Part shown: positions 12,201 through 49,913 of the stretch, in pieces | Layout of the letters: the number at the start of each line of letters is the position of its first letter | Position numbering within the stretch: position 1 is the stretch's first letter | Position numbers and translations under genes: made by a program | From: Gracilinanus agilis | Taxonomy: Eukaryota | Assembly: GCF_016433145.1 (NCBI RefSeq) | Contig: NC_058131.1 | Location: 611,962,698 to 612,026,697 of the forward strand | Length of the DNA stretch: 64,000 bases | Direction of reading: 5' to 3' | Notes under the pieces: generated by a model | The model's input: only the letters and a program-made list of their open reading frames with translations | Told to the model about the DNA's origin: nothing | The model's database searches: none

Positions 12201-13911
12201 TGCTCTTCCTTTGTCACTACAGAGGATCTTGGTTCAAATCCTGCCTCTTGATACTCCCTGTGTGACCTTAGGTAAGTCATTTGAACCTTGGTTTCCTCAT
12301 CTGCAAAATAAGATCATTGAAATAGATGGTCTTTGAAGTTCTTTCCAAGTCTAGCCTCATGATCTCGGCCCTCTGGCCTCTATTTCTGTACTCAACTCTT
12401 GCCAGTGCCCATTCCTCGTTTCTCCCCTTCGCCATTTCTGTTCCTTCTTCTGCTTCCCCTCCCCCTACCTTGGTTGAATTGAGGGGTCTCCCTCCTAGTT
12501 TCCCAGGGCCTCCCTTTGTCATTTCCTGCCATGCCCATCTGACAACCCAATCCAATAAGCCTTTACTAGGCACTTGCTTTCTAGAGCCGCAGGTTAGGCG
12601 CTGAGGGGTGAGATGGTATACACCACCATAAAAGAAATAGGGAACACGCCCCAAAATGGGGCAAGCCACGTGCTGAGGTGAGTCTGGAGAGTGGAGGGCA
12701 TTCCTGGCCTGCTCAAGCGGGACCCATGAAGGTGGCTTCCTTCCTGGAAGAGGTGACGCTCAAGTTCAGCCCTGAACACTTAAGTGGGAATTCCAAAAGG
12801 GCAGGAAAAAACCATGCCAGGATGGAGGAGGCCGTCTGAGCCCACTCTGGGAGGCTGGAAGCTCTGAGTGTGACCAGAAACTGGCCCCCTCAGGGGTTCT
12901 TCACCTCTTCTCAGTGTTTTAGGATCACACCCAGCATTACAAAGGGAAAGGATTACACCGAAGTATGTTTGCAGCATGTTTTTAAAACAAGTGCGTGGCC
13001 CCCGTTAACCCCGAACTAGGCGACAGACTCCTGGAGGAACGGGCAGAGCCGGCCCTCCGACGCTTGTCATTGACTGGTGTCTCAGGATCGGCCTCCATCC
13101 TCCCGGCTGCGCTGGCCTCGACAGTTTTCCTGAAGTTGGAGCGGCCCTGCCGGTTCTCCTGCCCCTTGGCCTGGGCCAGCCCCAAACGCCCCTTAGGAAG
13201 GTCGAAGTCCTCTCGTCTCCGGAGCCCAGTGACTCTCTGCCTCCTTCGGCCCCTGGCCCGAGCCTGATCCTTGGGAAACTGGGCGAGCGGGTGCGCGTGG
13301 AAGAGTGGGTGGTAATGAGGTGGCCGTGAGTGGCGGCGTGGGGGGAGGCTCACATTCACTCAGGCAGACTCATAGCTCTGTCAGACTGATTGGTCCTGAG
13401 CGGAGGCGCCAACGGCCCCCCGTGGACACACTGAGATTGGTTATAAAATTACAGGCATTTGTTCTGCTGTCAGGGCCCCTCCCTCCCTCACACACACTCT
13501 CTCTCTGCTTCCCCCACCTCCAGGGCTCTAAGCCTGGGCCTCGGGCTCCGGGGAACCATCTCAAGAAAGTGGGAGAAGGGCTGGGGGGTCCCGTCTGTCC
13601 ACGACCCGGGCTGTTGGGAAGGAATGGGGGGGGGGAACTTCCTGTTTCCTGTGGGTCACCTGAGGCTGGCCAGTCCCAGCGCCCTGCCCCGCCCCCAAGA
13701 CGGGAAGCCTCGTAGCCTCCAGATCGCCCGAGCAAGGTTTCTTGCTAAGCCTTGAGCCAGGGACCCTGGAGGGAGGAGGAAGAGACCCAGCGTGGGGACT
13801 ATTTGGATCCCTACCTCATGCTTCCCTGTTCTTGGCTACACAGTCAACCCAGAGAGAGAAGTCACACAGACTCAAAGGCAAAAATTTTAAAGGGGTGGGG
13901 GAGTTGGGGGG

Positions 13912-14110
13912 GCGCGACTGGGTGGCTCAGTGGATGGAGAGCCAGGCCTAGAGATGGAGGTCCTGAATTCAAATGTGGCCTCCTACGCTTCCCAGCTGTG
14001 TGACCCTGGGCAAGTCATTTGACCCCCATTGCCTACCCTTATTATTCTTCTGCCTTGGAATCAATACATATTGATCCTAAGGCAAATGGTGAGGGTTTTA
14101 AACAAATGAA
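13912..14110 (+). mobile_element. Marsupial CORE-SINE
   Basis: GGGTGGCTCAGTGGATGGAGAGCCAGG...TGTGTGACCCTGGGCAAGTCA...TCTGCCTTGGAATCAATAC. Confidence 0.85.
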
Positions 14111-29577: not shown

Positions 29578-29914
29578 NNNNNNNNNNNNNNNNNNNNNNN
29601 NNNNNNNNNNNNNNNNNNNNNNNNNNNNNNNNNNNNNNNNNNNNNNNNNNNNNNNNNNNNNNNNNNNNNNNNNNNNNNNNNNNNNNNNNNNNNNNNNNNN
29701 NNNNNNNNNNNNNNNNNNNNNNNNNNNNNNNNNNNNNNNNNNNNNNNNNNNNNNNNNNNNNNNNNNNNNNNNNNNNNNNNNNNNNNNNNNNNNNNNNNNN
29801 NNNNNNNNNNNNNNNNNNNNNNNNNNNNNNNNNNNNNNNNNNNNNNNNNNNNNNNNNNNNNNNNNNNNNNNNNNNNNNNNNNNNNNNNNNNNNNNNNNNN
29901 NNNNNNNNNNNNNN
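29578..29914. other. Assembly gap (337 N)
   Basis: Run of N. Confidence 1.
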
Positions 29915-30790: not shown

Positions 30791-31635
30791 GCCTGGAAGA
30801 GAGGGGGCAGGGGGCCCTCATCGGCAGAGTGGGAGCCCAAAGCAGCTCTCCCCAACCCCCATCTCCTTTGCTCTTTCCTCTACCTCCCTTTCTTCTCTCT
30901 TCCTTCCTTGTCCCTCTATCCACCATCTGAAGCTAGCCTAGGTTGGCGACCCATCAGTAAACGTGTTTTGCCTGAAGGAGAGGAAGAGGCAGAAAGGGGA
31001 AGGGCCTGGCTACAGTGGTCAAGCTCACCTTGATCCCTGAGCATTGAGAAATGGGGACTATTCCTAGACACAAAAGGGGAAACTGAGGCTAAAAGCCTGG
31101 GGTGGCCCTTCATAATCTCTGGCTCCTCTCCCTTTGTAGCCCCTCTTTCTTTAGTGTCCTCACACTGGGGGAGGAAAGCAGAGCTGGGACAGACGCTCCT
31201 CCTCCATCTAAGCCTCTTTCCCCAGGTCAGGAAGGAGAGGGGGGCCTCACTGCAGTTCAGAGGTGGAGAGGGGCCAGAACACCTCTCCTGCCAGGAGGGA
31301 GAAAGTCAACCCCACCCTAGGCAGGAACTCGCTACCCCAGCTCAGAGGCACAAGCCGGTGTCTTCTTCGGTCCTCGGGTTCCCTCTGCTGGCCTTTCCCT
31401 GAGATGCAACTGCCCTTCCCTGCTCCCCAAACCCAGTTTCCCTCCCCAAGAAGCCACCAATGAGCGCACCCTGACCCTGGGTCACGTTGTGGCCTTGCCC
31501 CTCCAGCCATGCCCACACAGACCCCACTTTCCTGTCCAATACCTGCTTGGACCAGGGGCAGGAGTGACGGCCGATATTTCTGCTCTTTCATAAATCCAGG
31601 CCTGAGAAGGAGAGGCCCAGCTTCTTCAATGGGAA

Positions 31636-31641
31636 TTTATT
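31636..31641 (-). terminator. AATAAA polyA signal of the unnamed gene
   Basis: TTTATT on + strand, about 127 nt downstream of the predicted stop. Confidence 0.65.
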
Positions 31642-31767
31642 TTCCAAATAAAAACAGCACCACGGTGGCCCCAGAACCATTCCCTTCTCTTCAGGAAAGC
31701 TCTGGTGCCCTGCCTTCCCCTGGCACTTGTGTGAGAAGGTGAGGAGATGCCAGCCCAGCCATGTACC

Positions 31768-31947
31768 TTAGAGGGGGGTGAGGAACCCTCTCCCCCAAGT
31801 TCTTAGAGCAAGGAACCCAGGAGCTTGACCCTGAGGCCAGGAAGCCTGGGCTGGTGGGCTCAGAATGGGAATAAGGAAGTTGTGGCCAGCAAGTCCCTGA
31901 GCAAAGCCCCGAGAATGACTGGAGTTCTCCCCTTGTGTAAGGCAGAT
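31768..31947 (-). CDS. Unnamed gene, last coding exon with subdomain XI-like RGFAQGLAGHNFL and TAA stop
   Basis: Acceptor CTTCTGTCCTCTTCCAG|; 59 aa then TAA at 31770-31768; pattern R-x2-A-x2-L-x2-H-x-F-L. Confidence 0.72.
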   Translation of the reverse strand: MCLTQGENSSHSRGFAQGLAGHNFLIPILSPPAQASWPQGQAPGFLALRTWGRGFLTPL

Positions 31948-32058
31948 CTGGAAGAGGACAGAAGCTGTCCCTGGGCATGCCTGGAATCAGGATGCTTAGG
32001 TCCCACAGAAGTTGGAGGCAGCCCCAGGCCAGCTGGGGTGACCCGAGAGTCTCCCTAC

Positions 32059-32104
32059 CTCAGCATCCCCTTCTGTGAAGAACAGTCTGAGGAGGCAGCT
32101 CTGA
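32059..32104 (-). CDS. Unnamed gene, short exon (Q)SCLLRLFFTEGDAE
   Basis: Branch point CCCTAAC, alternative acceptors at 32105/32101, donor GAG|GTAGGG, phase 0 into last exon. Confidence 0.6.
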
Positions 32105-32255
32105 CTAAGAGGTTAGGGTGCTTTGGTGCTCTAAAGTGCTGTGTTTTGATGTTCCCTGAGGTCTGGTCTTTGTTCACAGGGTACAAACATTCAGAGAAGA
32201 CATCCTGGCCTCATCCAGATGCTCCTCACGATCCCCAAGGTCCTCCTCCAGCCAC

Positions 32256-32454
32256 CTCCACATTCGCTCCAGCAAGGCCTCTGTGGCTGGAGTGTCCTCC
32301 TGTCCCAGGGAGAAGAGGTCACCTCTGTGGAGACTGCTGGTCTCTAGCTCTTACCAAGGCCACAACTCAGCCCCTTTCCCCTTCCCCCTAGGAGAGCTGG
32401 GTCCTCTCCTCTTGTGCCTCACTGCCAGTGCCCCCAGGGAGGCTGGGGAACTGC
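32256..32454 (-). CDS. Unnamed gene, unresolved region; one frame-preserving reading uses exons 32454-32423 (AVPQPPWGHW) and 32324-32256 (GDLFSLG...LLERMW)
   Basis: GDLFSLG resembles the DxWSLG alphaF motif; splice sites are weaker and alternatives exist. Confidence 0.4.
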
Positions 32455-32597
32455 CTGGGGAAATGAAGGGCCCGAGGTGCCCACGGTCACACAACTAGCA
32501 TGTGGCACTGGCCAGATGTGAGGGCAGGTCTCCAATGCTAAGGCCTTTCCTGAGGGCCTGGAGGGGAGAGGAGGGTGAGGGAAAGGCTAACAGGTAC

Positions 32598-32699
32598 CTG
32601 TGGTGTGTTCCATACCAGCTGGAGGGCATTTCTCAAAGTCTTTCTAAAGACATAAGGTCCTTCGTTGCTGCTGAGTCCACTGGGGTCAAAACGGATTCC
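32598..32699 (-). CDS. Unnamed gene, subdomain VII-like exon (GIRFDPSGLSSNEGPYVFRKTLRNALQLVWNTPQ)
   Basis: Acceptor CCCCTCAACAG|; phase-0 donors at 32616 (CTG|GTATGG) or 32598 (CAG|GTACCT). Confidence 0.78.
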
Positions 32700-32853
32700 C
32701 TGTTGAGGGGGAGGGGAGTGGGAACAGCTCAGAAATCAGGCAGGGGTCTCCTGTAGCTCCCCTTCTTCATGGCCAACTGGATCTCCCTCCCCAAAACCAG
32801 GGTTCAAGAGACAGGGATAGAGAGACAGGGAGGACTCCAGGAAGCAGCGATAC

Positions 32854-32990
32854 CTGGTGGGTATGAAGCAGGGCTGAGTTCACTTCCTCCAGCTGCAGGC
32901 CTTGGTGTTGGCAGAACTGTAGGAACCTCAGGACCTCCAGGAGGCACTTCAGTCTGTCCAGCTGCTGAGCTGCTGGCGGCCACCCCACAG
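32854..32990 (-). CDS. Unnamed gene, kinase-like subdomain VI exon
   Basis: CCCCAG| acceptor, CAG|GTATCG donor; 137 nt phase 1-0; TVGWPPAAQQLDRLKCLLEVLRFLQFCQHQGLQLEEVNSALLHTHQ. Confidence 0.85.
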
Positions 32991-33282
32991 CTGGGGCGCA
33001 GGAGACAAAGCTGACCAAGGGCAAAGGAAGCCCCAGTTTCCTCCCATTCTCAGTCTGAACAACCCAAGAGTCCCCCCAAAAGTGGCTCATCTGAGCCCAG
33101 CTTTCAACGTGTATGCGCTTGTTCAGAGAGACACCCCTCCTAAAACTGTCCCACTTTCCAAGTCCATTGGAGAGTTATGGAAGGAACAGGCCTCAACTTA
33201 TCAAAGTGGCTTTCTTATCTGCCAGCCAGGGCAGAAACAGTAGGGAAAGCCTTGGCTCTGGAGTCAGAAGGTATAGTTGGGG

Positions 33283-33480
33283 GGCAGCTGGGTAGCCCAG
33301 AAGATGGAGTGCCAGGACTGGACATGGGTTGGGAGGTCCTGGGTTCAAAGTTGGCCTTAGATGCTTCCTAGCTGTGTGACCCTGGGCAAGTCACTTAACC
33401 CTGTTTGCCTAGCCCTTGCTGCCCTTCTGTCTTAAAGTTGTTACAAAGACAGAAAGTAAGGGTTTCAAACATAAATCAAA
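33283..33480 (+). mobile_element. Marsupial CORE-SINE in intron of unnamed gene
   Basis: Head GGGGCAGCTGGGTAG, core, AAAGACAGAAAGTAAGGG tail. Confidence 0.82.
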
Positions 33481-33895
33481 AAAGAAGACAAATTTGAGTT
33501 CCAGTTCTGCTCTCTCCTCATCTAGGGAGCTGGAAGGAGTCTCCCTGCCTTCAGTGAGCCTCATTTAGTATATGGGAATTATTAGTTCCTCCATCAGTTG
33601 GCTGTGAGGACTGAATGAAACACAAAGTGTATACCTATGAGTACCTACAAACATTTGTCAAACACCCAATGGGCTCTTATTTCTACTATTATTTGGGGGT
33701 CATAATGGGGGTGACTTGCCCAGGGTCACACAGCCAGGCAGTGTCTGGGTTCATATTTGAACCCAGGACCTCCTATCTCTAGACCTGGCTCTCTAACCAC
33801 TGAGCCACCTCACTGCCCCCTTTACTATTATTCTTAAATTGAAACTGAGACCCATAGAGGTCAAAGGACTTGCCCAGGGCCACACAGAGACAAAG

Positions 33896-33957
33896 CTAAA
33901 GACATAAGAAGGTCTTTTGTTGCTGCTGAGTCCACTGGGGTCAAAACAGATTCCCTG
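33896..33957 (-). pseudogene. Decayed intronic copy of the 5' part of exon 32699-32598
   Basis: 56/59 identical to 32644-32702 plus a 3-nt insertion; reads GICFDPSGLSSNKRPSYVF. Confidence 0.85.
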
Positions 33958-34264
33958 ATGGGGCCACGAGGTAGCCCAGTGGATAGAGCACACCAGACCT
34001 GGAGCTTGGAGAACCTGGGTTCAAATGTGACCTCAGACATTTCCTACAAAAACTTTTCTGCTGGGAGAGGTGGGTGGAAACAGAGCTCAGGGATGGGGAG
34101 GAAAGAGAGGGGGAGAAGCTGCTCACATCTCCCCTTCTTCCTAGCCTAAGGACCAGAGTCAAAGCCATTACTAAAACCCAGAACCCTTGACTGCCAGTCC
34201 CAATGTTCCTATACCAGATTTTCCCAAAGGTCCCCTGTCTAAAACTGAAACTAAAAAACAAGCA

Positions 34265-34455
34265 AGGAGCAGCAGGGTGGCTCAGGGGATTGAGAGCCAA
34301 GCCTAGAAGATGGGAGGTACTGGGTTCAATTCTGGCCTCGGACACTTCCTAGCTGGGTGACCCTGAGCAAGTCACTCAACCTCCACAGCCCAGCCTTAAT
34401 GCTTTAGACCCAGTATGGAGTCTAAGACAGAAGGTAAGGGTTTAAAAACAAAAAC
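34265..34455 (+). mobile_element. Marsupial CORE-SINE
   Basis: Core and AGACAGAAGGTAAGGGTTTAAAAA tail. Confidence 0.82.
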
Positions 34456-34882
34456 AAGCCTGTTTCTCTGGAAAGGAGGAGAAAACTGAGAAGAGAGCAG
34501 GCATCCCTGAACTCTCTTCAGGCTTCCCAGCTTTGTATGCTCAGCTCCTGCTAGATTTGCCATCCTAATATTCTAGAAAGGGGCCCGGGGTTAGGGAAGA
34601 GAGACAGTTACAGGATGGAGGGTCAAGAGGGCCCCCCCCCAAGCCCTTGTGTGATAGCCCCAGGGGCCAATTGTGTGCTGGCACCCAAGAGCCCTCCATG
34701 TTCTCAAAGCCAAAGCCTCTGAGCTAGGGACGGGGAGGGGAGGCCTCAATGGTCCTGAGACTCCTCCTGTGGCCCCTCGGTGAGCTCAGAAAGCACCTGG
34801 GGATCCTTCCCCACCCCCATCCCCCAAGCATCTCAGGACTACAGCGTAGGGGCTCTGCCTCCTCCCCAAGCCTCCCCCTTAC

Positions 34883-35024
34883 TTAGAACTCCAGGGTCCT
34901 CCATAAGGTAGAGCAGGGAGCCCTGTCGGTCATAGAGAACAACGTAGGGCACCAGCAGCCCCGGCCCGGGGGGGAGGAAGAGAAAGTGATGGAGCATCTT
35001 CTGCCAGTCCGAGACCACGGGCAC
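34883..35024 (-). CDS. Unnamed gene, kinase-like subdomains III-V exon
   Basis: CTCCCCAG| acceptor, CTAA|GTAAGG donor; 142 nt phase 0-1; VPVVSDWQKMLHHFLFLPPGPGLLVPYVVLYDRQGSLLYLMEDPGVL. Confidence 0.85.
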
Positions 35025-35239
35025 CTGGGGAGATCGAGAGGAGCCCAGAGGGGCTGGGGGGGGGGTCACGAGGAAAGACCCCGGGCTGCCATTCCTGGGG
35101 CGGGATCCCAGAAAGACGCCGGGGTCGGAGAGAGAACTGGGGCATGGGAGAGAAACTTCCCCAAGCCTTTTCGGGGCAGCAGGGGGCCCCGGATTGCTCT
35201 GCCCCAGGCAGGCGCGGAGGGGCAGGAGCCTCCGGCTTG

Positions 35240-35950
35240 GAACTTTAATCACCCACCAGCCCCACCGGCCACTCCAAGGCTAACCATAAACGCTGCCCAC
35301 CCCCTGCACCTCCTCCTCCCCCAGGTGTGGGGGCCGGGGGCCGGCTAGAGTCTGCCGACTCTAACCTGCCGCCTCCTCCCCCTGCTCTGGGTAAGCAGTC
35401 AGTCAGGGCCGCATTCCCGGGGGGCGGGGCTAGAGAGGGAGGGAGGGGAGCGGTGGGAGGAGGGAGGGGCCGGCCATGCTCTCCACTCACCCCCACCCCC
35501 ACCCCCGCCCCAACTCCTCCTCCCTCCCTAGCGCCGGTGCGAGGAGGAAAATGAATGAGAATTTATCATGATTAGGCAAATCCGGCAGGGGCGCGATTCC
35601 GGGGGAGGCTAAAAAGATGAATTTCAGCGATAAAGTTAAATAAGGACGGAGCGCCCCCCCCCTCCCCTTCCCCCTCCGCTGATCTCTCTTCCCACAATTT
35701 ATGAGCCGATTAGGCGGAGGCTGCAAGTTCCTGCAACTTCGCTAAGCGGCCCCGCTGTTCCCAGCAAATTAATTAACCGCGGGCTGCGCTTGGCAAAGGA
35801 AAGGAGGAGCCGGAGCCGCAGCCTCTGCCCACCCCCTCGGGCACCACCTCGCCCCACAGCTCCGAGCCTCCGGGCATTATTGTAGCACCTGACCCCCAGG
35901 GGGTGACCTCGTCCCGGCCAGGACCTCGGGGACATACACACACTGACGCG
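35240..35950. promoter_or_regulatory. Intronic orphan CpG island with homeobox-motif blocks
   Basis: High CpG density; AATTTATCATGATTA, CAATTTATGAG, AAATTAATTAACC. Confidence 0.6.
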
Positions 35951-36734
35951 TTTCAAAAGCGTGCACGGGGCAGCGAGGTGGCTCAGGGAAAGGAAAGCCA
36001 GGCCTGGGGACAGGGGGTCCTGGGTTCAAATGCGATCTCAGACAAGTCCTGGCTGGGTGACTCTGGCCAAGTCACTTAACCCCCCATTGCCAAGCCCTCT
36101 TCTGCCTTGGAACCAAGACCTAGTATTCACTCAAAGTCGGAAAGTAAAGTCTGTTGAAATCCCAAACCCAACGCGTTACTAAATGCCGTAGCTGGCAGGG
36201 CTGCAGAGAGCATCCAGTCCTACAGTCTCATTTCTCCGGGGAGTCTGAGCTCCCGCCTTGTGCAGTCGGGCTTCTGAGCTCATCCCTCCACTCAAATGCC
36301 TCTCTTAGAAGGTGCCAGGGATCACTGAACCCAGATTTGACGACTTTCGCTCAGCCTTCAGGCGCATTTGGCCACCTTCCCCCTCCTCCCTGTGGGGCTG
36401 CTCCTTCTGTCTCCGGGAGGGATTTCCAACCATGTCCGGCTCACAATAAAGCCCTCTTTCCCCTCCACACTCTCCCTTGGTGACTGCCTCAGCTCCCAGG
36501 GGCTAATTATCATCGATATGAAGATGACTGACTCCCAGTGGCCCATCCAGTGGCCTCTGGACATTTCCACCTGCTGCTCCATTGGTACCTCGGAATCCAC
36601 GAGTCCAAAACAGATTTAACTAGTGCTCTGCATCTAACAAATGTTTGTTGACTGACCCACCTGGCGTGGTTGTCATACCCAAAGCGTCTCTAACAAACAT
36701 ACATATACATGCATGTGTCTACATACATGGGCAC

Positions 36735-36980
36735 CTACGTGGCACAGTGGATAGAGCCCTAGGGCTGGAGTCTGAAAAGCTCATCTTCCTGAGGTCAAAT
36801 CTGGCCTTAGACCCTTACTACCTGTGTGACTCTGGGCAAGTCACTGAACTATTTGCCTCAGTTTCCTCATCAGTCAAGTGACTGAGAGAAGGAAATGGCC
36901 ACTACTCCAATGTCTTTGCCAAGAGAACCCCAAATGGGGTGATGAAGAGTCAGACAGGATTGGAACCACCAAACAATAAC
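36735..36980 (+). mobile_element. MAR1-like SINE
   Basis: GGCACAGTGGATAGAGCCC head, core, GAGAAGGAAATGGCC tail. Confidence 0.82.
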
Positions 36981-37136
36981 AACAACCAGGACCACTTTCC
37001 CAGCCTCTTAATCCCCCTGCCAGCAGGCCATGGGAAGTCTCCCTGCCTGCCATTGGAGTCAGTAGGCTGTATGGCTATAAAGGAGGCTTTATAAGGGAGT
37101 TACGGGCCTGATGGGTCCTCAGACCCATCTTCTTAC

Positions 37137-37289
37137 CTTCTTCATCAGCATCCACTCGCCAGTAACACGGTCTCGCACTCGGAACCAATGGTTGCTGAGC
37201 TGGGCAGTGACAAAGAAGTGGCGGCCCAAGGAGTAGTAATAGAAGAGGTTGGAGCCAGGGAATGCCATGCCTAGCTTCCGGCCATTCCT
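37137..37289 (-). CDS. Unnamed gene, kinase-like subdomains I-II exon
   Basis: Long pyrimidine tract CTGTAG|, donor AAG|GTAAGA; 153 nt phase 0-0; RNGRKLGMAFPGSNLFYYYSLGRHFFVTAQLSNHWFRVRDRVTGEWMLMKK; CpG-retaining. Confidence 0.85.
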
Positions 37290-37484
37290 CTACAGAGGGA
37301 GAGAGAAAGAGAGAAACAGGTGGGGATGGAGGGAGAGACAAAGGGATGGGGACAAGCAGACATATCCATACAGATTGAGACAGAATGATGGAGGGAGGGA
37401 ATGAGAAAGGGGGAGGAATGTGAGTCATGAAAGACAGAGAAAGGGAAACACACACACACACACACACACACATTTATATACTGT

Positions 37485-37740
37485 CAGGAGCTGCTAGATG
37501 GCACAGTGGATAGAGTACTGGGTCCGGAGTCAGGAATGTACACCTACCTGAGTTCAAATCTGGCCTCAGACACTTACTAGCTTTGGGATCCTGGGTAAGT
37601 CACTTAACCCTTTTGCTTCAGTTTCCTCATCAGCAAAATGAGCTGAAGAAGGAAATGGCAAAGCACCCTAGTATCTCTGTCAAGAAAACCCCAAATGAGG
37701 TCAATAAAGAGGGAGACATGATGGAAAATGGACCGACCAA
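37485..37740 (+). mobile_element. MAR1-like SINE
   Basis: GAGCTGCTAGATGGCACAGTGGATAGAG head through GAAGGAAATGGCAAAGCACCC tail. Confidence 0.85.
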
Positions 37741-38864
37741 AAATATATGGAGAGAAAAGGGAGGGAGGGAAGAAAAGAGAAAGAAAGAGGAGAAACTGAG
37801 AGACAGACAAAGGCAGAGCTACCAAGAGAAAGGAGACTGGACTAATGAGGCATTTTAGGGACTGAGAGATCTCATTTGGACAATAACACGATGCAGTGAA
37901 AGCTGCACTGGGTTTGGGAGGAGGGTCTGGGCTTGCCACCTACCTGAGTACAAACTCTGTTACCTCTCTGCCCTTCGGAATTCTTGGCTATAAAATGAAA
38001 GGGTTAGACTGGATGACCTCGAAGGGAAGAAAATCCCAAATGGGTCAGGAAAAGACAGACACAACTGAAAACGACAAAATGATAACATGGATTCCAGCTT
38101 CTGAGGTTCTAGAACTGGATGATTTCTGGGAAGGACCCAACGCTGCTCAGGGGGCTGAGGGAGAAGAGGTATTTGTCCATATTAATACTAAAGCGTAAGA
38201 AGATGGATGGGTATGGAAAGGGAACATGAAGAAACAATGGGAGTTTATGATGAGAAAACTAAGTTTTAAAAAATTTCCTATTTTTTTGAAACCCTTAGCC
38301 TCCTTCTTAGAACCGATACTATATATTGGTTCCAAGGCAGAAGAGCAGTAAGGACTAGACAATGGGAGTTAAGTGACTTGCCCAGAGTCACACAGTTGGG
38401 AAGTGTCCAAGGCCACATTTGAACCCAGGACCTCCTGTCTGAAGGCCTGGTTCTCTATTACCCCTAAAACTGTCTTAAATTTTTTTAATTGTCTTAATTA
38501 AAATCTGATCTTCCACAAGAAGTTTTTCCCAGTCCCTCTCGAGTCTCATGCCTTCCCACTCTTATTTGCTTCCAACTTATCCTATATAGAGTTTGTCTAT
38601 ATATTTGTTTGCATGTTGTCTCCTTTGTTAGCTTGTAAGGTCCCTAAGGTCAGACTATTTTTTGCTTCTTTTGGTATTGGGAGAAGGCTTAACACAGGCC
38701 TGGCACATAACAGGAGCTTAATAAATGTTGACTTATTTATTGACTGCCCATCTGATCTTGTTTGTCTTCCTTGGCTAGCAAAGCTTTTCTGTTGGTGAGT
38801 GGTAAGAACTAGATGGCAGAGATTAAAAAAAAAATTTTTTTTTTTATGGCTTAGATGGATCCAG

Positions 38865-39265
38865 GGCAGCTAGGTGGACAGTGGATAGAGAGCCAACCTT
38901 GAGGTCAGGGGACCTGAGTTCAAATCTGGCCTCAGATACTTACTAGCTGTGTGACCCTGGGCAAGTCACTTAACCCTGATGGCCTCAGTTTCCTCTTCTA
39001 CAAAATGAGCTGGAGAAGGAAATGGCAAAACACTCTGGTATCTTTGCTAAGAAAACCCCAAAGGGACAGCAAGGTGGTTCAGTAGACTGAGAGCTAAGTC
39101 AAGAGATGGGAGGTCTTGGGTTCCAGTCTGGCCTCAGACATTTCCTAGCTACATGACCCTGGGCAAGTACTTAACTCCCATTGCCTAGCCCTTATTGGTC
39201 TTCTGCCTCAGAACCAATACACCATATTGATTCTAAGACAGAAGGTAAGGTTGGTTTGTTTGTTT
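38865..39265 (+). mobile_element. Two adjacent marsupial CORE-SINEs
   Basis: MAR1-like 38865-39065 directly followed by Mdo-tail SINE 39065-39265. Confidence 0.82.
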
Positions 39266-39329
39266 TTTATAAATTGGCCAACAAATAAATAAATTTTGGA
39301 GGAAGATTTTCTGGGGCCCAGGAAAATCC

Positions 39330-39545
39330 CTTTAGGAGGTATGTGGGCCAGAACAGAGGGGGTCAGATATTCAGCCCACTGGCTATATGCCCCCCTTAAC
39401 ATCCTGGAGTGCAGCCTGAATCAAATTAAAATGTAATTGGGAAATAGTTGACAAAATAAATCAAAATAGAATAAAACATAGATAATGTTAATATATGGTT
39501 TTCTACGTGGCCCTGCTGTTTCTGTTTAAGTTTGGCATAACTGAA
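39330..39545. mobile_element. Non-autonomous hAT-like (MER45-type) remnant
   Basis: AT-rich core AAAATAAATCAAAATAGAATAAAACATAGATAATG and terminal TTTCTGTTTAAGTTTGGCA. Confidence 0.4.
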
Positions 39546-40029
39546 CTAGAATAGAACCTTTCAGCAGACTAGATTTAAGCTTGGAAGTCACCCAGATTCT
39601 TCCTAAACACATTTCTGATAAGCTGTATTTTGACTAGATTTGCAATTTCATGCATGTAGGGAAATGACTGTATCATCTTCAGCAAATTATTTCCTGTTCT
39701 TTGACTTAATAGACTTAGAAAGTTGGCTGGGGGAGGCACTGAGAGGTATAAGAATTTGCCTAAGGTCACATGTGTCAGAAGCAAGACTTGAACTCAGATT
39801 TTCTGTCCCAGAAGTCAGTCCTCTATCCGCTGTCAGGACTGCTTCTCAATTTATGTTAAATTCAAATATTATTTCAGACTAATATTTTCTCTTTATAAAT
39901 AAAGATCCTTCCTCACACTCACAGATAGCAGGCTGATATGGTAAAGGTATGGATATGGTAAAGGAAAGGAATAAGAAGCCTGGAGCTACAAGCATCTTCT
40001 GGTGGCAACATTCAGATACAGGCAGGATG

Positions 40030-40242
40030 TGCTGGAAGCCACCTAATCTACCCTGCTTGTAAGCTGATTGTTAAATGTCCAGCATTTATCCCTCAGAAAT
40101 TAGCAATTACTCAGGTTTCTAGTTTTGTTGATTGTCTAAACTTAACAAAATGATAAGGATGCAGATTAAACTTAAAAGCATGTGAATATGCTGTTTCCCC
40201 ACCCAGAGAATCCAGTTGTTAAACATTTCCCAGCACACCTCT
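40030..40242 (-). mobile_element. MER63-like hAT remnant, reverse orientation
   Basis: TTTTGTTGATTGTCTAAACTTAA...ATGCAGATTAAACTT...CCAGTTGTTAAACATTTCCCAGCACAC; reverse complement of the element at 24.7 kb. Confidence 0.7.
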
Positions 40243-40815
40243 GTATGGCTCCATATAGCTTGAGCTCAGCAAGAGTATGGTAGACTGTAAGAGAAGGATG
40301 ACTGGCATTTGTAGAGAGCCTTCCATCAAATGTAGCCCCAGACACTTCCTAGCTGTGTGACTCTGGGCAAGTCACTTAACTCATGTTACCTAGCCCTTAC
40401 AGCTCTTCTGCCTTGGGACCAACACAGAGTATTGATTCTAAAACAGAAGGGAAGGGTTAAAAAAAAAAAAAGTTGGGTTAGGGGGAGCCTTCCATCCATC
40501 CTCTCTCTCATTTGAAGTCATCTCTGGATAGAGGGATCTCTGTTCCTTGAAGGGTGGCATCTGGGGCTTTAATGAGTAGGAATGACCCCAACAAAATGAG
40601 GTCCTGGCACATAGCCGGTAGTATGGACTCCCCCTTACAAGCTGAGATCAGAGACTTCACAGGCAGGGCTAGGAGCACAGACAGTCGCCTGGGAGGGAGA
40701 TCACTGCCAGGTAGGACTGAGCAGTAGATGGGGTAGGAGATGGCAGACTTCCAATAGAGGGAAGAGCCTGTCCCACGAGGTAAACCAGCCCCCAAAAACT
40801 TCCAAAGGCGCTCAC

Positions 40816-41869
40816 CATCGTAAGGAAAGCCACACGCAACCCGGAGTGTTCCTGGCTACCAGCAGTCAGGGTAAGGCCACCAGTGGTTAGGGCCAGGCCA
40901 GAGTCCAGTAGAGTGAAACTGTGGCCGTCACTGTCCAGGAAGAGGCGTCGAAGCCATTCCAGAAGCATGCAGCCCGCCTCCCTTACCTGGCGCCCATAGC
41001 TATCTTCCACAGAGGGCTTTGGGGAACTGACCCAGCACTCCTGATCTGTCTTTGGCTTTCGAAAGTCTATTTTGCAGTCTTCCCCATTTAAACTGGCTCC
41101 ACTGTCCACTGATCCAGCCTCCCCCTGTCCTGCTTCCTCTCCAGGTCCCTCTGAGGATACTCCCTCCTGCTCCTTTCCCTGGGGTTCAGCCCCTGGATCC
41201 AAGGGCTCTCCCTGCCCCCCAGGGATCACTCCTGTTGGGTCCTTCCTGATCATTACTTCCACAGGCCAGGGACAGGCCCGTGGAGGCTCCAGTGCCTCCC
41301 TGTGTAACACAGAGGAGTCACTAGGCAAGGTCCAAGGTTTATCCAGAGCCCAGGGCAGAGTAGTAGGAACAGGACCCAGTCTGGAGTCTGGGCTCAGACT
41401 GGGGGCCCCTGCCCAGGAGTGTGCTTGACCCCAGGGCTTCTCAGGTGCAGGGTCCCCCTTCAGTGGCTTCCGGTTTTCCAAGAAGATGGCCCCACTGGTA
41501 CCCAGGCTGAAGGGCAAAGTGGATGTGAGGCTCAGGGCTTTAGAGCCAAAGGTGCCAGAACTGACCCCTTCCTTCTCCTGGTCCTGTGAGGTGGGACTCC
41601 CGGGCAGTGAGGGAGCAAGCAAGGATGGGCCAAGAGTACTCTCAGTCACTGGGGTCCTCAGAGTGAGTGGATGGGAGTGCATCCCCCCGGAAGGCAACAG
41701 ATTGGCTGTGAGGTCCATGTCACTCTCCATGGTGATGGGGGAGCTGGTGTCTCTTGAGGCCGATTCTGGGCCAGGGAGGTTCAGGAACTTTGGGGACGAT
41801 GGTCCCTCTCCCAGCTCACTGTTCCCAGGTCTGGTGGGAGAGATCCCAAGTCTCTGGTGAATGGCTGCC
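40816..41869 (-). CDS. Unnamed gene, large Ser/Pro/Gly-rich exon ending ...EWLRRLFL...HSGLRVAFLTM
   Basis: Part of the 454-aa ORF 40669-42033; phase-2 acceptor ACTCCCCCTCTCCCAG| at 41870 and donor ATG|GTGAGC; 1054 nt open. 5' boundary less certain (ATG at 42033 is an alternative). Confidence 0.72.
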
Positions 41870-42191
41870 CTGGGAGAGGGGGAGTATTCCTGACTATCCC
41901 AAGGAGGACTTGGGAGAGCCTTGAAGACATTATTACTCGGGGGTGGGGGCGTTGGAGGATGAAACATCCATCTAGAGTCCAGGCTTTTGAAGCTGTGTCT
42001 CCACCCACCACCCTCCAGCCTGACATTAGTCATCCCAGCCTATGGCTCCCTGGAGCCCCTGTGGTGGGGGTTGGGGTTGGGGGAATACCCTGAGGAGCTA
42101 CCAGAGATGATTCCTAGGAAAATTCAAGGCCCCCATATTCCTGTGGGCCCTGTCCCTCTGGCTTCCTGAGGTTCAGGCTCTCACAACTCAC

Positions 42192-42243
42192 CGGTAGAAG
42201 TTGGATGGGGCATCTTGGTCTCCCTGGCTCAGCTCCTGAATCC
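42192..42243 (-). CDS. Unnamed gene, 52-nt exon (IQELSQGDQDAPSNFYR)
   Basis: Acceptor CCTCTCTCACTTGCAG|, donor CG|GTGAGT; phase 1 to 2. Confidence 0.6.
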
Positions 42244-42528
42244 CTGCAAGTGAGAGAGGCACATGATGGGACAAAAGGCCAGGATTCCCAATTTTGTGTG
42301 CTCCGTGAAGTCTTGGCCCAACTCTGGGGTCACTGGGGGAGCTTGCAGCCACCTCCCTGATCTCTCCCAGATCTCTCCCCTACCTTGTACCCCCGAGATG
42401 GGTCCCTTCCCTTTTCTCTCCCCCCTCTTGCACTCCAGTGTCCCAGGACAAGGGGGAGGGAGATCCCAGCTGTCCAAAGAAGGCTCTGAGCAGTGAGTGG
42501 GGAGGGTAGGGGAGAGGGGTGTCCTTAC

Positions 42529-42604
42529 CTCTCTCCAGGGGCTGGTTGGCCCTGGACTCAGCCAGGAAGCACCGCAGACAGCCAGATGAGGGGGGCTCCA
42601 TCAT
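42529..42604 (-). CDS. Unnamed pseudokinase-like gene, candidate first coding segment (MMEPPSSGCLRCFLAESRANQPLER)
   Basis: Strong donor AG|GTAAGG; ATGATGG with good Kozak on second ATG; phase 1 fits next exon. True start may lie further upstream. Confidence 0.5.
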
Positions 42605-44859
42605 CCCTGGGCCAGCTCCTTCTGCCTCTTCCCAGACTCTGTGGGATGGGGGAGCTGCCCAGCCTGAGCTGGGCAGTGGATGGAGGCTGACCACTTCCAC
42701 TGGCCCAGGGTAGCGGCCCTGCTAGACCCCACGAGAGGGTCTGAGAAACTTGTGTCAGGAAGTGTCAGATGGAAACTGAAAGTAAGAGAAGCATCAGGTC
42801 TGAGCATGTGCGGGCGGGGCCTGGCTGGGGGCCCAGGCTCTCCGGGTCAGGCCGGGGCCCTCCTCCCAGGAAAGCACTAGGGCAGCCAGAGCCTGTCCCT
42901 GCCCACCCCAGCCTTAGGGAGAAGGCAGGAGCCCCCCCACCCACCATGGTGCCACTGGGGCCATTTTACAGGCCTCCAAGGGGGAAGGGACAGCTCTCCT
43001 CCCCAGGCCCAGCCAGTTGAGCACTGTCTCCTGCCCCATCTGATCTAGGGCTTCCTCAATGAAGGGGGTCCTACACTCTCCCTATGGTTGGGAAGGTCTG
43101 GCCACCAAAAGGCTTTGGGAGAACCTTGACTGCTTTTGAGTGAGGATCAGAGGGTAAACAGGTGGAAGGGGCACCTGGAGCTTTTCTCTTTCCATCTCTC
43201 TCACCTATCTGTTCTCTTCTGGCTCCGTTCTGACCCTGCTGGGGCTCACATCTGAGACTGGGGGACAGGGTCCTGAGATGGGAGAGGCTAGACCAAAGAC
43301 CTCCCCCAGAATCTAAGGGGGTCACTAGGTAGGGGGAGCCAAGGTTTTTTTCCTAGGGCCCCCTATCTAGGGCTGCTGCTGTCGGTGTTCTGCTTAGATG
43401 TCCCCCACTCGGCAGTGGAAATTCCCTCTCTGCATCCCACACCATCAAAGGTCCCCTCAAGAGGTTCTGGAATCAGTTGGGGGATCCCTAGGAAATGCCA
43501 ACCCCAAATGGTCTGGTATATTAGGCATAAGGTAGGGAAAGGGGCCTTCCAACTAACACTTATTTCCTGGGGAGGCTAAGATGGAGAGCAGAATTATGGG
43601 CTCATGCTTCCTTTTAGAGGATTCCTACCCCTACCCCCAGCTAAAAAGGTTGGGGTGAGAACACAGGGTAAGAAAGGGAGAACCCCCAGATAAGTCATGA
43701 GCTCTGGGGCAGCATACCTTACTTGGGGTGGGCTTTTGGGGGCATGTAAGCCAGGGTGGGGGTGCGGTATAGGCTCTCTTGGGCCAGTGCCTCCCCCTCC
43801 AGTACCAGTGGCTTCTATTCTACTCTAGCCTGGAGTCTCCCAGAAGCTGCAGTACCTGGTCAGCCCAGCCAGGGCCATTGATAATTGGAGAAAAGGCTCC
43901 ATCCAGTCGCCAGCCTCCAAGGCAGGAGAGCCAAGGATAATGTCTGCCCTCCTGGTAATGAGGGGTCTTCAGAGTCCCTCCACCATTCTCAAGGGATGAG
44001 CAGGCCATTGCTGCTGGCCAGCAGGGGTCACTTTAGAGCTGGCCCAGAACTTGCAGACTCTGGCTAATGAGAAGGGTAGAGGAGGGTATGGAATGTACCC
44101 CATCCCCCCAGGGGGTCAGCATTTCACAGGTGTGCTGCTCCCTGGGGAATGAAGCCTATCCTTGGTGGTGATGAGGGCGGGGATGGGGAATGCACAAGGT
44201 TCCCCATCCAGGTTGGCTGGGAGTGGAAAGTGGCAGTTTTATACTGGGGAATCAATCGAGGGCCCCTCAAAGGGGAGGCCTCATCAGGGCACCTGGTCAG
44301 CATTGGGGCCCAGATCAGGGAGAACTTGTCCCCTCATAAAGGACCTTTTAAGGCTCTGGGCACTTTGATGAGCCGCATTTGGTGAGTTAGCACTGTGGTG
44401 TGAATGGGGCCACCAGCCACCTTTATGGAGGAGGGGCCCTTTTGTTCCTACCCTTTCATGCTCTGCCCCTTTGCTTCTTCCCTAAAGATAGCTCAGATTT
44501 CAGGGGCCCAAAGTTGAGGGAGTTGCGGGGGGGGGGGGTCTATTTCCTTGTTCCTGGAATTCTAGGTGTCCTGAGGAAGGGTTTGGTATGTATGGCTGCC
44601 ACCAAGCAAGATGAGGAAGAGAGAAGAGTCTTTGGTCTGCTCTCTACTTCTCCCAAAGGGCAGGGACCAACAGAAAAGGACAGATCCTCGGGAGTCCCAG
44701 AGTGATATCTTCTAGGTGGGACCCAAAGGGATAATCTCCAGTGTCCAACCTCCAGAACTCAACAAACATGTATTAAGGACCACATTGACATCCTTCTTGC
44801 CTCGCCTTCCCTGCACAGCACCTCTCATGGAATGGGGACTCAGTTGTGTGGAATGAAGA

Positions 44860-45194: not shown

Positions 45195-45790
45195 TTTTTT
45201 AAACTCTTATCTTCTATCTTAGAATCATACTAAGTATTAGTTCCAAGGCAGGAGAGTAGTAAGGACTAAACAAACGGGGTGAAGTGACCTGCCCAGGGTC
45301 AGAGAGCTAGGCAGTGTCTGAGGTCCCATTTGAACCCAGGAGCTTCCAATTCAAGACCTGGTACTCTATCCACCAAGTTCCCTAGCTATCAGAACCTCCC
45401 CCCCCTTTTCTATTCTTAGTGACATGATAGAACATATGTGGCTAAGGCAAAGATGATGGTATTTAACACTGTGAGCACAAGAGGGAAGAAGCGTGTCAAA
45501 ACAAGGTAAGAAAAACGACTGGGGGAACTTTAGTGGGCAGCTTTCTTCATTATAAGTAAACAGGGAGACATAACAACCAAAAAAATCAAATGTTGAGGCA
45601 ACTAGATGGTTCAGTGGTTAGAGAGCCAAGGCTGGAGACAGGAGATCTTGGGTTCCATTGTGGTCTTAAGACACTTCCTAGCTGTGTGACCCTGGGCAAG
45701 TCATTTAACCCCAGTTGTCTAGCCTTTACTGCTCTTCTACTTGGAATAGATAGTTATCGATTCCAAGGCAGAAGGTAAGAATTTTTGTTT
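45195..45790. mobile_element. Two CORE-SINEs in opposite orientations (about 45195-45390 minus, 45595-45790 plus)
   Basis: Core and tail motifs as in other copies. Confidence 0.78.
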
Positions 45791-48492
45791 TTGTTTTTGT
45801 TTTTTAAAATCTAATGCCATTTTAGACTGCAGTAAGAGACATGGTATCCAGAACACAGGAAGTGAGCCACCTTCCTTCCCTTGTCAGGAGCACCTAAAGG
45901 ACTGTGGTTGGCTATGAGGAATGCTTTTTGGAGAGGATGACAACAATGACTTGAACAGAATCCCAAGATGATGATGGTGTTTGAAATAGTTGTTAATGCC
46001 TAGCCTAAGAGAAGTCTTGGGAGTGGGGAGCGGGCAGTTTTGAAATGATGGCTTCCATCTGACTACTGGAAGGAATGTCAATCAAAAGAGGGATTGCATT
46101 TTTTTTCCTCCTTGCTCTGCCCCAGAGGTAAACCTAGAACAACGGATAGAAGATTTAGACTCTATGCAAGGAAAAACCTAATTAGCTGCTCCAAAATGGA
46201 ATGGACCATCTTCACTCTATAATTAAGAAACTATCAAGCACCTACTATGTGCCTGGCACTATGCTGGGTACTGGAGATGCAAGGATTGAGTGTAAAACAA
46301 CCCCTACTTGTAAAGTGCTTACATCTGAATAGGGAAGACAGAGTTCAGTACAAAGTAGTTTGGAAGAAAGGACAATAGCAACTGGGGTTGGGGATCAGGA
46401 AGGGCTTTGTGAAGAGGCTGGAACTTAAGCAGTTTTAAAGGAAGAGAGAGACTCCTGAGGCTGAGACAAGGAGGGAGTGTGTTTCAAGGATGAGGGATGA
46501 TGGCCTAAGACAGAACCTTAGGGAACATCCACAATTAAGGGGTAACATATAGATATGATCTCTCTCACTTATTCAATCTGACCTCCTCTCCAGGACCACA
46601 TTTGGAGTTTTCTTGGTAGAGATAATGGAGTGGTTTACTGTTTCTTTCTCCAGTTCATTTTACAGATAAGGAAACTGAGGCAAACAGGGTTTAAATGACT
46701 TGCCCAGGATCACACAGCTGGTGTCGGAGACAAGACTTTGAACTTTTTTTTGACTGTTTTTGTTTTTATTCTTGGTGCCTCAACAGTTTGTTTATCCCGC
46801 ACACACTGGCCATCCCTCTTATCCTCCTGTCTGGACTCATACTCTGATTCTTGGACTCTGAGCTCTAATAGGGGAGCTTCTGCCATCCCTTGTCCCCTAC
46901 CCAATGCACCAATGAGCTGCCCTCTCTCTCATTAGGGATCTTCAAATAAAGCCTGGGTGGCCACTATTTAGGAATGTTATAGAGGCAATTCCTTATCAGG
47001 CGCTGGATTGGACTAATAGAAGATGTCCTTTGACTTTTTCTTTTTTATTAAGTATTGGTTCCAAGGCAGAAGAGAAGGGTGAGAGTATTGGGATTAAGTG
47101 ACTTGGCCAGGGTTACCCAGCTAGGAAGTATCTGAAGCCAAATTTGAACCCATTACCACTGGTCTCCAGGCCTGGCTCTCTATCCACTGAGCCATCTAGC
47201 TGCCCTTGTCCTTTAACTCCTGAGATTCAGCGTAGAGGTGGTAAAAGACAAATGCAGAGTTGCTATCTTCAGGATCAGAAGGACTATCCCAAAGGAGGTT
47301 GGACTTATTCCACGAAGCTCTAAAAAGTCAAACTAGGAACACCGGAAGGAAGTCACAGAGGAAGATTTTATTTCGACTCCAGAAAAAAGTTCCTAACAAT
47401 TAAAGCTATCCTATCATGGAAGACTGTCCAACATTAGAGGGGTTTTAGGTGGCAGATATTCTACAAATAATAACTTACATTTCTGTTGTGCTTTCAGGTT
47501 TGAAAAGAGCTTCAGTACAACCCTGAGAGGTAGACTATCTTCATTTTACAGATGGGGAAGTTGAGGCCGGGGATCCCACAAGTAGTAAATGGCAGAGCCA
47601 GCACTCACAGCCCAGGTCTTTGACCTCCAGACCAGTATTCTTCCCACTCCCCGAGTAATGCTACTCTGAAGCGACTCTGGCAGGGGGCATTCTTGAATTG
47701 AGCCAGGGATTGGATGAGGCAATTCCACTGCAAGTTTCCCAATCTCCTCTCCTGACAACTCATCTAGCATACCAAATCCAATTTTTTCCTAAAACATCTT
47801 GCTTGTCATTCATTGTTTGGAAAATGTTAACACCTCCCTATTCCTACTGCGTCATTTCACCTGTCTCTCCTCTTTTGAGGCTCTCTGTGACGGTTTAATG
47901 TTTTTCATATTCCCCCAAAGAGCTGCTCTGCTCCAACCATGCCATTCTCTTCCTGTGCTCATTAGGACTATCTCATTTCTCCTGATGTTGCCCTGTCTAA
48001 AACACCCCACTCTTCCCTCCTTCCCCCTTCATCAAGTTTTCCCTGACCACTGGAGTCCACAGGGATCTCTCCTTTCTTCAAACTCCCAGTGTACTTAGCT
48101 GATATCACATGATTTCGCCTATAATTATTCAGTTTCTTATATGTGTCTTTTCTCCCTAACCAGCACAGGAGCTCCCTAGAGGCACACAGAACCAATCTTC
48201 TCCTCCTTGTCTCCCTTACAGTTTCAGCAGAGGGCTGATAAATACATATGATGCATGGGCTAAGGAGCTTTACCACACCCCGTACCACCCCCACCCCCCA
48301 GTCCCCATCACTTGGCTTTAGAGGTTCCAATCCTTGAGTTGACCTGAGCTGACTCTGTTCCTGTCTTGGCCACTGGCATCCCAACAAACTCCCTGAAGGT
48401 GACTCGTCTTCCACATCTGGAAAATTAGGCCCAGAGAGGGAGTTGCAGGAGGCACAGATCAAAGACAGCAAAGGATATAATATCTAACAGAT

Positions 48493-49066: not shown

Positions 49067-49431
49067 TCACCAGTCCCGCTCAGAGGGCTCACGGTATGGC
49101 AGGCCCAAAAGTTTGAAGACATCCTTCTCTGTGGGGGTGGGCAATGCCCGGCCTGGCCCCACCTTGACACCATGGCCATCACGCACAATGGCAGTGCTGA
49201 GTGCATGTTCTGACAAGCTCATGCCCTTTGTTTTGGCCAGTGCCCTCATGGAGCGGTTAAAGTAGGCAGAGCCAGTGAAATACAGTAAGGCACAGGCAAA
49301 CTCACTATAGGGCACCACAATGATGTCCAAGCGCCGGTGGTGCCGGCCAGGCCCTGGCAACTGGCACACGCCCAGGTACTTCTGCTGCTGCCCATTATCA
49401 TCCTGGCTGACCAGGTCATCTGTCAGGAACC
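49067..49431 (-). CDS. POLL: POLL last coding exon, palm/thumb (RRLDII, YFTGS), stop TGA
   Basis: GFLTDDLV...[32 protein letters not shown]...REPSERDW*; 365 nt. Total CDS 1683 nt = 560 aa. Confidence 0.97.
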
Positions 49432-49744
49432 CTGCACCAGGATGGCCAGGAAGAAGAGGGAATTAGGAGATGGAGAGAAGAGTCTAAAACCTCCCCCCAA
49501 CTCCAATCTCTTTTCTCCTTGTGCTCTGAGAAATACAGATCATCAGGAGCACAAGCTTCTTTGAGACAGCTCCAGGAAAGAAAGTGATCTGTCTGATGTC
49601 ATATAGCTAATCAACTCAGGGCTTGAATCCAGGCCTCCTGATTCCCATCCAGGCCTCTCTTGGTTCCCTCCCCACTTGGTGCCCCCACTTCTCCCCAGGC
49701 TTTATCCTTTAAGGAGCCTCCTGGCCACACCTGGAGCCCCATAC

Positions 49745-49913
49745 CTCGTTTCCGAAGGGCATCCAGGAGCCGACTGAAGATGCCCTGATGAGACCGTCCA
49801 TCTGGGTGAGTGACCAGCACATCAACATCCCCACACGTAGCCTTACCCCGGCGATAGGAGCCACATGCCACAGAGAGCAACCCAGGATTGAGAGTATGAG
49901 CTGTCTCCCGGAC
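49745..49913 (-). CDS. POLL: POLL coding exon 7, palm with GSYRRG and DVD catalytic aspartates
   Basis: [32 protein letters not shown]; 169 nt; donor G|GTATGG. Confidence 0.97.

Follow-up and report, generated by a model that had tools for sequence, protein, structure and literature searches.

A predicted pseudokinase encoded beside POLL in the opossum Gracilinanus agilis, and its family in jawed vertebrates

Downstream of POLL, on the minus strand of a 64,000-nucleotide stretch of the genome of the marsupial Gracilinanus agilis (contig NC_058131.1, positions 611,962,698 to 612,026,697; this whole stretch is the window, and its own numbering is used here), lies a gene of eight exons with an unbroken open reading frame (ORF) of 613 amino acids (aa). 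Its product joins a disordered N-terminal arm to a conserved C-terminal domain, which we read, with a probability of about 0.7, as a non-catalytic pseudokinase derived from a kinase and acting as a scaffold or allosteric partner. A pseudokinase is recognised by a kinase fold that has lost its catalytic motifs. Both are found here: the fold is predicted by a structural model, and the glycine loop, the HRD motif and the catalytic-loop asparagine are gone.

A predicted kinase fold

The C-terminal domain covers about 290 aa. It was modelled with AlphaFold2 from a 32-sequence alignment and without templates, yielding a predicted local distance difference test score (pLDDT) of 80.9 and a predicted template modelling score (pTM) of 0.80. 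The predicted fold is that of a bilobal kinase, with a five-stranded N-lobe and its αC, a hinge, αE, a catalytic loop and β7-β8. Ahead of the N-lobe, in which αC is short, the chain forms a long helix and two β-hairpins, an N-terminal extension of about 90 residues that is additional to the kinase core. In the C-lobe the model keeps αE, the degenerate catalytic loop, β7-β8 and two or three helices; it has neither activation segment nor APE region. Only some 65 residues (three helices), among them no APE-like motif, follow the FDP that stands in place of DFG, against roughly 130 in canonical kinases.

Structural searches with this model match kinases almost exclusively. Foldseek found at least 500 matches in the PDB at E<1e-3; the 50 listed are all kinases or pseudokinases, with NIK (MAP3K14) first at E 5.6e-7. 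Against the Swiss-Prot section of AFDB, all of the matches listed are kinases. VIA-align superposes NIK over 202 residues at 3.5 Å (Z 12.9), and among 48,161 chains searched without Foldseek the 50 best matches are kinases throughout (COT, Z 12.5; NIK, 12.2; Rio2, 10.5), where the background stated for the VIA tool is Z = 7-8. The best match in the ESM Atlas is the MAP3K14 cluster, with a template modelling (TM) score of 0.62 over residues 5-287. Among the AFDB clusters a separate model of a turtle orthologue agrees with ours (TM 0.84), and nearly all named matches are kinases; language-model neighbours are kinase, PEAK3 and PAN3 clusters. An earlier note on this DNA, made from its letters alone, had proposed AlphaFold and Foldseek as a check on its suggestion of a probable pseudokinase, and that check thus came out in its favour, the matches being nearly all kinases. 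Sequence methods by themselves do not identify a kinase. Run against the PDB, a profile of the whole domain reaches Snf1 at only E 0.17. Restricted to the core, it reaches Snf1 at a borderline E of 0.005, then AMPK, Ssp2 and STK4, 12 of its 13 matches being kinases. Aligned with Snf1, the core profile keeps the order β3, αC, β4-β5 and αE without a break as far as the catalytic loop.

Loss of the catalytic motifs

Across the family the motifs that a kinase needs are degraded to different degrees. The β1-β2 loop, QLSNHW here, is free of glycine in the window protein and in 29 of the 32 aligned species, and GxGxxG occurs in none. A lysine in the modelled β3 (MLMKKV) is invariant across the 32 sequences; no acidic residue occurs in the short αC (SDWxKxLHNFLFL). 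At the catalytic loop, shark, coelacanth, lungfish and turtles have HPGD, which looks like an ancestral relic of HRD; monotremes have LGD there, and marsupials all have LEE (LQLEEV in the window protein). Where HRD has its aspartate, most frogs have N, K, H or Q, gar and bowfin N, and all marsupials E. The position of the catalytic-loop asparagine is taken by S, T, I or L throughout, and DFG is replaced by an invariant FDP. Measured over 14 clade representatives, mean identity is lowest among the core elements in the catalytic-loop region (0.44) and highest in β2-β5/αC (0.74-0.90), the LLDSG hairpin (0.79) and FDP (0.71).

Because the glycine loop, the αC glutamate, HRD and the catalytic-loop asparagine are missing and DFG reads FDP, we infer that the domain does not phosphorylate; a role as scaffold or allosteric partner would be more likely. 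In such a mechanism the conserved face of the N-lobe and αC, together with the cleft of the pseudo-active site, would bind a partner, and the disordered arm would recruit further partners through two short linear motifs. PEAK-family scaffolds work in a comparable way.

The arm, of about 320 aa, is intrinsically disordered and gives no family or fold signal. In a 14-species alignment two motifs are kept from shark to marsupials:

41668 to 41742, minus strand: arm motif 1, SPITMESDMDLTANLLPSGGMHSHP, with the pattern SPIT(T)E(T)D(I)D.TA.LLPSGG..SHPH
41494 to 41529, minus strand: arm motif 2, LTSTLPFSLGTS, with the consensus STLPFSFGT

Within the family the arm can be as short as about 270 aa or, in frogs, approach 1,800 aa, with its motifs and the C-terminal domain unchanged. 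Nine frog orthologues carry in addition a C-terminal tail, G.(I/V/F/T/L)PF(S/C)(F/L)P.F, similar to STLPFSFGT, which hints that tail and arm may share a repeated docking motif.

Exons and annotation

The gene model was built by tblastn with orthologous proteins and from the context of the splice junctions. It consists of the following parts, the secondary structure being that of the predicted model:

42529 to 42604, minus strand: exon 1, coding part, with the ATG at 42604, the peptide MMEPPSSGCLRCFLAESRANQPLER... and a donor GT at 42528 (tblastn with the Trichosurus orthologue)
42192 to 42243, minus strand: exon 2, 52 nt, peptide IQELSQGDQDAPSNFY, AG and GT flanks (tblastn and junction context)
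40816 to 41869, minus strand: exon 3, 1054 nt, the disordered arm and the first part of the conserved domain (N-terminal helix, LLDSG hairpin)
37137 to 37289, minus strand: exon 4, second hairpin of the N-terminal extension and β1-β3 of the kinase-like N-lobe, with MLMKK as last residues
34883 to 35024, minus strand: exon 5, αC (SDWQKMLHHFLFL), β4, β5 and the hinge (YLMED)
32854 to 32990, minus strand: exon 6, αE and the degenerate catalytic loop (LQLEEV, 32898-32881, where HRD is expected)
32598 to 32699, minus strand: exon 7, β8, FDP replacing DFG (RFDPS, 32693-32679) and the first C-lobe helix, ending in NTPQ and a donor GT
32174 to 32299, minus strand: exon 8, coding part, EDTPATEALLERMWRWLEED...NVCTL, with the stop TGA at 32176-32174
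31636 to 32173, minus strand: probable 3' untranslated region (UTR), ending with AATAAA at 31641-31636, a polyadenylation site predicted from sequence alone

This arrangement is far above chance, because the same exons and boundaries exist in possum, platypus, turtle, frog and gar. Much of it had been seen in the earlier note: the minus-strand exons it claimed (40816 donor, 37289-37137, 35024-34883, 32990-32854, 32699 acceptor) have their AG and GT sites and join in frame, the junction phases 0,0,1,0 are recovered from the eight-exon model, an AATAAA does follow the stop, and the peptides quoted for kinase subdomains I-II, IV-V, alphaE and VII lie where they were placed and agree with the structure model. 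The 3' end had been read differently. The exon taken to run onward from 32699 ends at 32598 (NTPQ, then gt), and reading on meets a stop. GDLFSLG, offered as subdomain IX, lies at 32323-32303 in another frame, in the last intron directly 5' of the exon-8 acceptor at 32299, and RGFAQGLAGHNFL, offered as subdomain XI, lies at 31911-31873 in yet another frame, past the stop codon in the 3' UTR; both are noncoding. Subdomains IX and XI are absent from the protein and the C-lobe is shortened. Of the proposed pseudokinase, then, the fold (as predicted) and the degraded motifs stand, and these two subdomains fall away. The true C-terminus, EDTPATEALLERMWRWLEED...NVCTL, agrees with the orthologues and with RefSeq protein XP_044516101.1, and the product has 613 aa over eight exons in place of the roughly 680 aa first estimated.

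The earlier note had taken the gene to be unrecognised, which it is not. It is already RefSeq LOC123234238 in the Gracilinanus agilis genome, an uncharacterised prediction of the kind for which the earlier note had allowed, and relatives carry LOC103103159 and others. The RefSeq product, XP_044516101.1 (349 aa), is 100% identical to the window exons and uses precisely exons 4-8; it omits exon 3 (1,054 nt) and takes exon 2 in a different frame, after an upstream exon:

43856 to 44008, minus strand: N-terminus of XP_044516101.1 (tblastn of its residues 1-51, 100% identity)

In the proteins of the orthologues this upstream exon has no counterpart, and it is probably an alternative or 5' UTR exon. 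The protein encoded by exon 3 is 90% identical to that of Monodelphis LOC103103159 ("uncharacterized protein"), and other marsupial RefSeq models contain the exon. Because exon 3 is open, conserved and present in those models, the 613-aa product is probably the main isoform and XP_044516101.1 an incomplete or minor-isoform model. The local annotation is corrected accordingly: the 349-aa model probably leaves out an exon of the gene. A search of sequencing runs found about 15% of exon-3 words in 23 runs, labelled "RNA?", of a close relative.

Intron 5 holds, amid copies of a short interspersed element (SINE), a remnant of exon 7:

33896 to 33963, minus strand: decayed exon-7 copy, 68 bp, outside the transcript model

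The copy comprises the acceptor and 5' end of the exon, with 88% identity to 32644-32708, and is not present in Trichosurus. It encodes GICFDPSGLSSNK... and retains the cysteine of other marsupials at a position where the functional opossum exon has arginine. It was considered as an alternative exon and rejected: it precedes exon 6, measures a mere 68 bp, has SINEs on its flanks and is missing from Trichosurus.

Distribution, inheritance and selection

Equivalent LOC models exist in Monodelphis, Trichosurus, Vombatus, Phascolarctos, Dromiciops, Notamacropus and Petaurus, and in both monotremes. With the domain profile, 1.84 billion representative proteins were searched exhaustively by HMMER, which returned 35 matches at E<=1e-3. 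Source records were at hand for 32 of them, all of which are this family or partial copies of it, every record being "uncharacterized" or misnamed after the low-complexity arm. The holders of the family are sharks; bichir, paddlefish, sturgeon, gar and bowfin; coelacanth and lungfish; caecilian, newt and many frogs; turtles; monotremes and marsupials. The search brought up no protein from a placental, bird, crocodilian, squamate or teleost. Table S1 of PMC10416458 counts Xenopus LOC101731243 as one of the frog genes missing from every placental considered, and lists orthologues only for Monodelphis, platypus, Chrysemys and Latimeria. The table is noisy and therefore lends weak support to absence from placentals. 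The idea that the gene is ancestral and was lost in eutherians, raised in the earlier note, is consistent with both sources, neither the exhaustive search nor the table giving a eutherian copy.

In a maximum-likelihood tree of 33 domains the branching follows that of the species (fishes; amphibians; turtles with monotremes and marsupials); the family is therefore a single-copy gene passed on by vertical inheritance. In possum, platypus, turtle, Xenopus and gar the exons are divided at matching positions (for example ...TM/RNG.KL and MLMKK/VPV, the slash marking the boundary, and an exon start at QG.CFDPS), so intron positions are kept from gar to marsupials. When the window is compared with Trichosurus, the ratio of nonsynonymous to synonymous substitution rates (dN/dS, Nei-Gojobori) comes to 0.18 in the C-terminal domain and 0.36 in the N-terminal arm; in the comparison with platypus it is 0.185 in the domain. 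Judged by these ratios, domain and arm are under purifying selection. The values are far from 1 and the ORF has no scattered stops, the two signs of decay for which the earlier note had asked that the locus be examined. With an intact ORF, these ratios and orthologues in many vertebrates, its view that this is a real protein-coding gene holds. The comparisons indicate a family that is single-copy, jawed-vertebrate-wide and conserved over about 450 million years.

A literature search (LOC identifiers, PEAK4, pseudokinase with loss) returned no paper describing the protein, and one line of a supplementary table only. The gene model itself is known; its kinase-fold nature, outside Pfam, appears undescribed in the literature searched, and so, apparently, do its ancient age, its linkage to POLL (in the amniotes checked) and the lack of any copy found in placentals, birds and teleosts. 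We lean, by a small measure, towards a broader proposal: that this is an undescribed family of pseudokinases descended from kinases, single-copy and dating back at least to the jawed-vertebrate ancestor, with a NIK-like N-terminal extension, a uniquely short C-lobe and linkage to POLL in the mammals and turtle checked, lost independently in placentals, birds, crocodilians, squamates and teleosts, its arm motifs marking a signalling scaffold.

Relation to known kinases and pseudokinases

NIK is the best structural neighbour in Foldseek against the PDB, in VIA-align and in the ESM Atlas, and comes second in the search of 48,161 chains. The match takes in the segment before β1 (model residues 16-94 against NIK 338-400), a shared N-terminal extension on the N-lobe, and NIK and COT (MAP3K8) show the highest sequence identity in the structural alignments, 15-21%. 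By contrast, NIK is an active kinase with a glycine loop, HGD, DFG and a full C-lobe, of which the opossum domain keeps at most the β3 lysine and the aspartate of FDP. It is not among the PDB sequence-profile matches at E<=10, and it leads the other kinases only narrowly (Z 12.9 against 12.0-12.5). A homology specific to NIK is not accepted, the structural lead being marginal and the sequence-profile signal absent.

The PEAK/NKF3 proteins (PEAK1, PRAG1, PEAK3) share their layout with the opossum protein: short motifs in a long, disordered N-terminal arm, followed by a pseudokinase between N- and C-terminal helices. A PEAK3 cluster is a top language-model neighbour (score 0.91, 182 of 256 features in common), which serves as a lead only. 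However, there is no PEAK protein among the 32 identified matches of the family profile, PEAK structures are not in the top 50 structural matches, and the pseudokinase domains of PEAK proteins are far larger and have a complete C-lobe. The likeness supports, by analogy, a protein that may work like a PEAK scaffold, without establishing membership of PEAK/NKF3.

Snf1 and AMPK, of the CAMK group, provide the best PDB profile matches (Snf1 as above; AMPKα2 and Ssp2 at E ~0.8), collinear from β3 to the catalytic loop. The significance is borderline, however; catalytic motifs, activation loop and C-lobe are not in common, and these kinases are not the top structural neighbours. The minimal kinases RIO and Bud32 resemble the opossum domain in having a kinase fold without activation segment or substrate-binding subdomains (Rio2, Z 10.5). 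They retain the catalytic Asp/Asn, the metal-binding Asp and the nucleotide-binding loop, residues that the opossum family is without, and they are universal housekeeping proteins, whereas the opossum family is confined to some jawed vertebrates.

Weighing the alternatives

Several points weigh against a non-catalytic pseudokinase made by an expressed gene. Pfam gives no significant match for single exons, five full-length proteins or the 32 domains, and the check by the Pfam model PF00069, also proposed in the earlier note, failed: no Pkinase match appears even at E<=10. Run against the PDB, phmmer finds no meaningful match for the Trichosurus orthologue. A first AlphaFold2 model, from a 7-sequence alignment, was poor (pLDDT 43), unusable, and was replaced. 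TM-scores to solved kinases, in Foldseek against the PDB, are only 0.40-0.47, because the C-lobe is shortened and the N-terminal extension added. The equivalence of K120 with the VAIK lysine and of D219 with the DFG aspartate is inferred from the spacing of predicted secondary structure, and the invariant β3 lysine, the invariant FDP aspartate and the ancestral HPGD may leave room for nucleotide binding or residual activity. The sequencing-run search, in which one run of Gracilinanus agilis is listed, gave no RNA run of the species.

The alternative that survives best, unlikely as we hold it, is an atypical but active kinase, or a nucleotide-dependent switch, in which the β3 lysine, the FDP aspartate and, often, an aspartate at the HRD position would make up a non-canonical centre (compare WNK, haspin, CASK and RIO/Bud32). 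K120 and D219 are indeed invariant in the 32 sequences, from sharks to marsupials; HPGD is still present in the loop of shark, coelacanth, lungfish and turtles, and monotremes have GD there. Rio2 turned up among the structural matches, and RIO kinases likewise have no activation segment. Yet the acidic residue of αC and the catalytic-loop asparagine occur in no species, GxGxxG is lacking in all 32, and the position equivalent to the HRD aspartate varies freely: all marsupials have E, gar and bowfin N, most frogs N, K, H or Q. The catalytic loop is the least conserved part of the core, and the window protein itself has LQLEEV there.

Slightly less probable is a resemblance to kinases that is no more than a shared or mis-predicted architecture, such that the domain would be an unrelated α/β interaction module and the name pseudokinase misleading. 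The empty Pfam result fits such an explanation, as do a best sequence-profile E of only 0.005, TM-scores below 0.5 against solved kinases, a model built from 32 sequences without templates, and a chain of only about 65 residues after FDP where canonical kinases have roughly 130. By contrast, four independent structure libraries (PDB, AFDB Swiss-Prot, ESM Atlas and AFDB clusters) return kinases almost exclusively among the matches listed, with Z 12-13 over about 200 residues, well over the background of 7-8. The profile alignment to Snf1 runs in the structurally expected register, and the spacing of the ancestral HPGD...FDP parallels that of HRD...DFG.

That the gene is decaying or non-functional in Gracilinanus agilis, its 613-aa ORF perhaps not made, is very improbable: it would account for the 349-aa XP_044516101.1 without exon 3 and with exon 2 in another frame, for the missing RNA run of the species and for the decayed exon-7 copy in intron 5, but each of the eight exons is open and keeps intact splice sites, the exon-3 peptide shares 90% identity with Monodelphis and the exon is part of other marsupial RefSeq models, dN/dS is 0.36 in the arm and 0.18 in the domain, and "RNA?" runs of a close relative (23) contain exon-3 words. 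A kinase-derived pseudokinase, probably without catalysis, remains the reading we prefer.

Neighbouring sequence

POLL lies just upstream on the same, minus, strand, with exons of its catalytic domain at about 49282-49862, one of them containing YFTGS; the gene starts about 6 kb downstream of it. The adjacency, on the same strand, is also found in Trichosurus, platypus and one turtle, where the neighbour has DNA polymerase lambda Pfam domains. The earlier note had set the gene between BTRC and POLL. The POLL side of this placement is borne out; for the other, a motif search of the window and of the 10-kb flanks of five orthologous loci brought up no BTRC coding sequence, and there is no BTRC coding exon anywhere in window positions 1-31000. 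In the Trichosurus locus a called gene (1-30773) with a 211-aa Tim17-family product lies on the same strand and extends over the whole locus, across the orthologue as well as the 3' end of POLL; read-through or mis-joining of the model is the probable cause.

Downstream of the gene, AT-rich sequence is interrupted by a GC-rich block at 12000-14000 (GC 0.57), which may be the CpG island of an unidentified transcript. Positions 29578-29914 are 337 N, an assembly gap or masked run with GA/CT-rich low-complexity flanks. A SINE-like repeat of about 100 bp, with 75-82% identity between copies, is dispersed through the window (for example 13921-14030, 35967-36075, 38864-38969, 45604-45703 and 47098-47205), and its translations (...LGKSLNP...LPWNQ...) recur among the ORFs of the window.

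Meaning for vertebrate kinomes

Catalogues of vertebrate kinomes were built from human, mouse and a few model species by means of Pkinase hidden Markov models. A kinase-fold family that is missed by these models and lacking in the species catalogued would escape them. If the present reading is true, such a family is missing from the kinomes of human, mouse, chicken and zebrafish and from Pfam. It would also be a concrete case of an old gene of signalling type, lost in placentals and retained in marsupials and monotremes. Xenopus, which has kept the gene, would offer a tractable system for finding its role.

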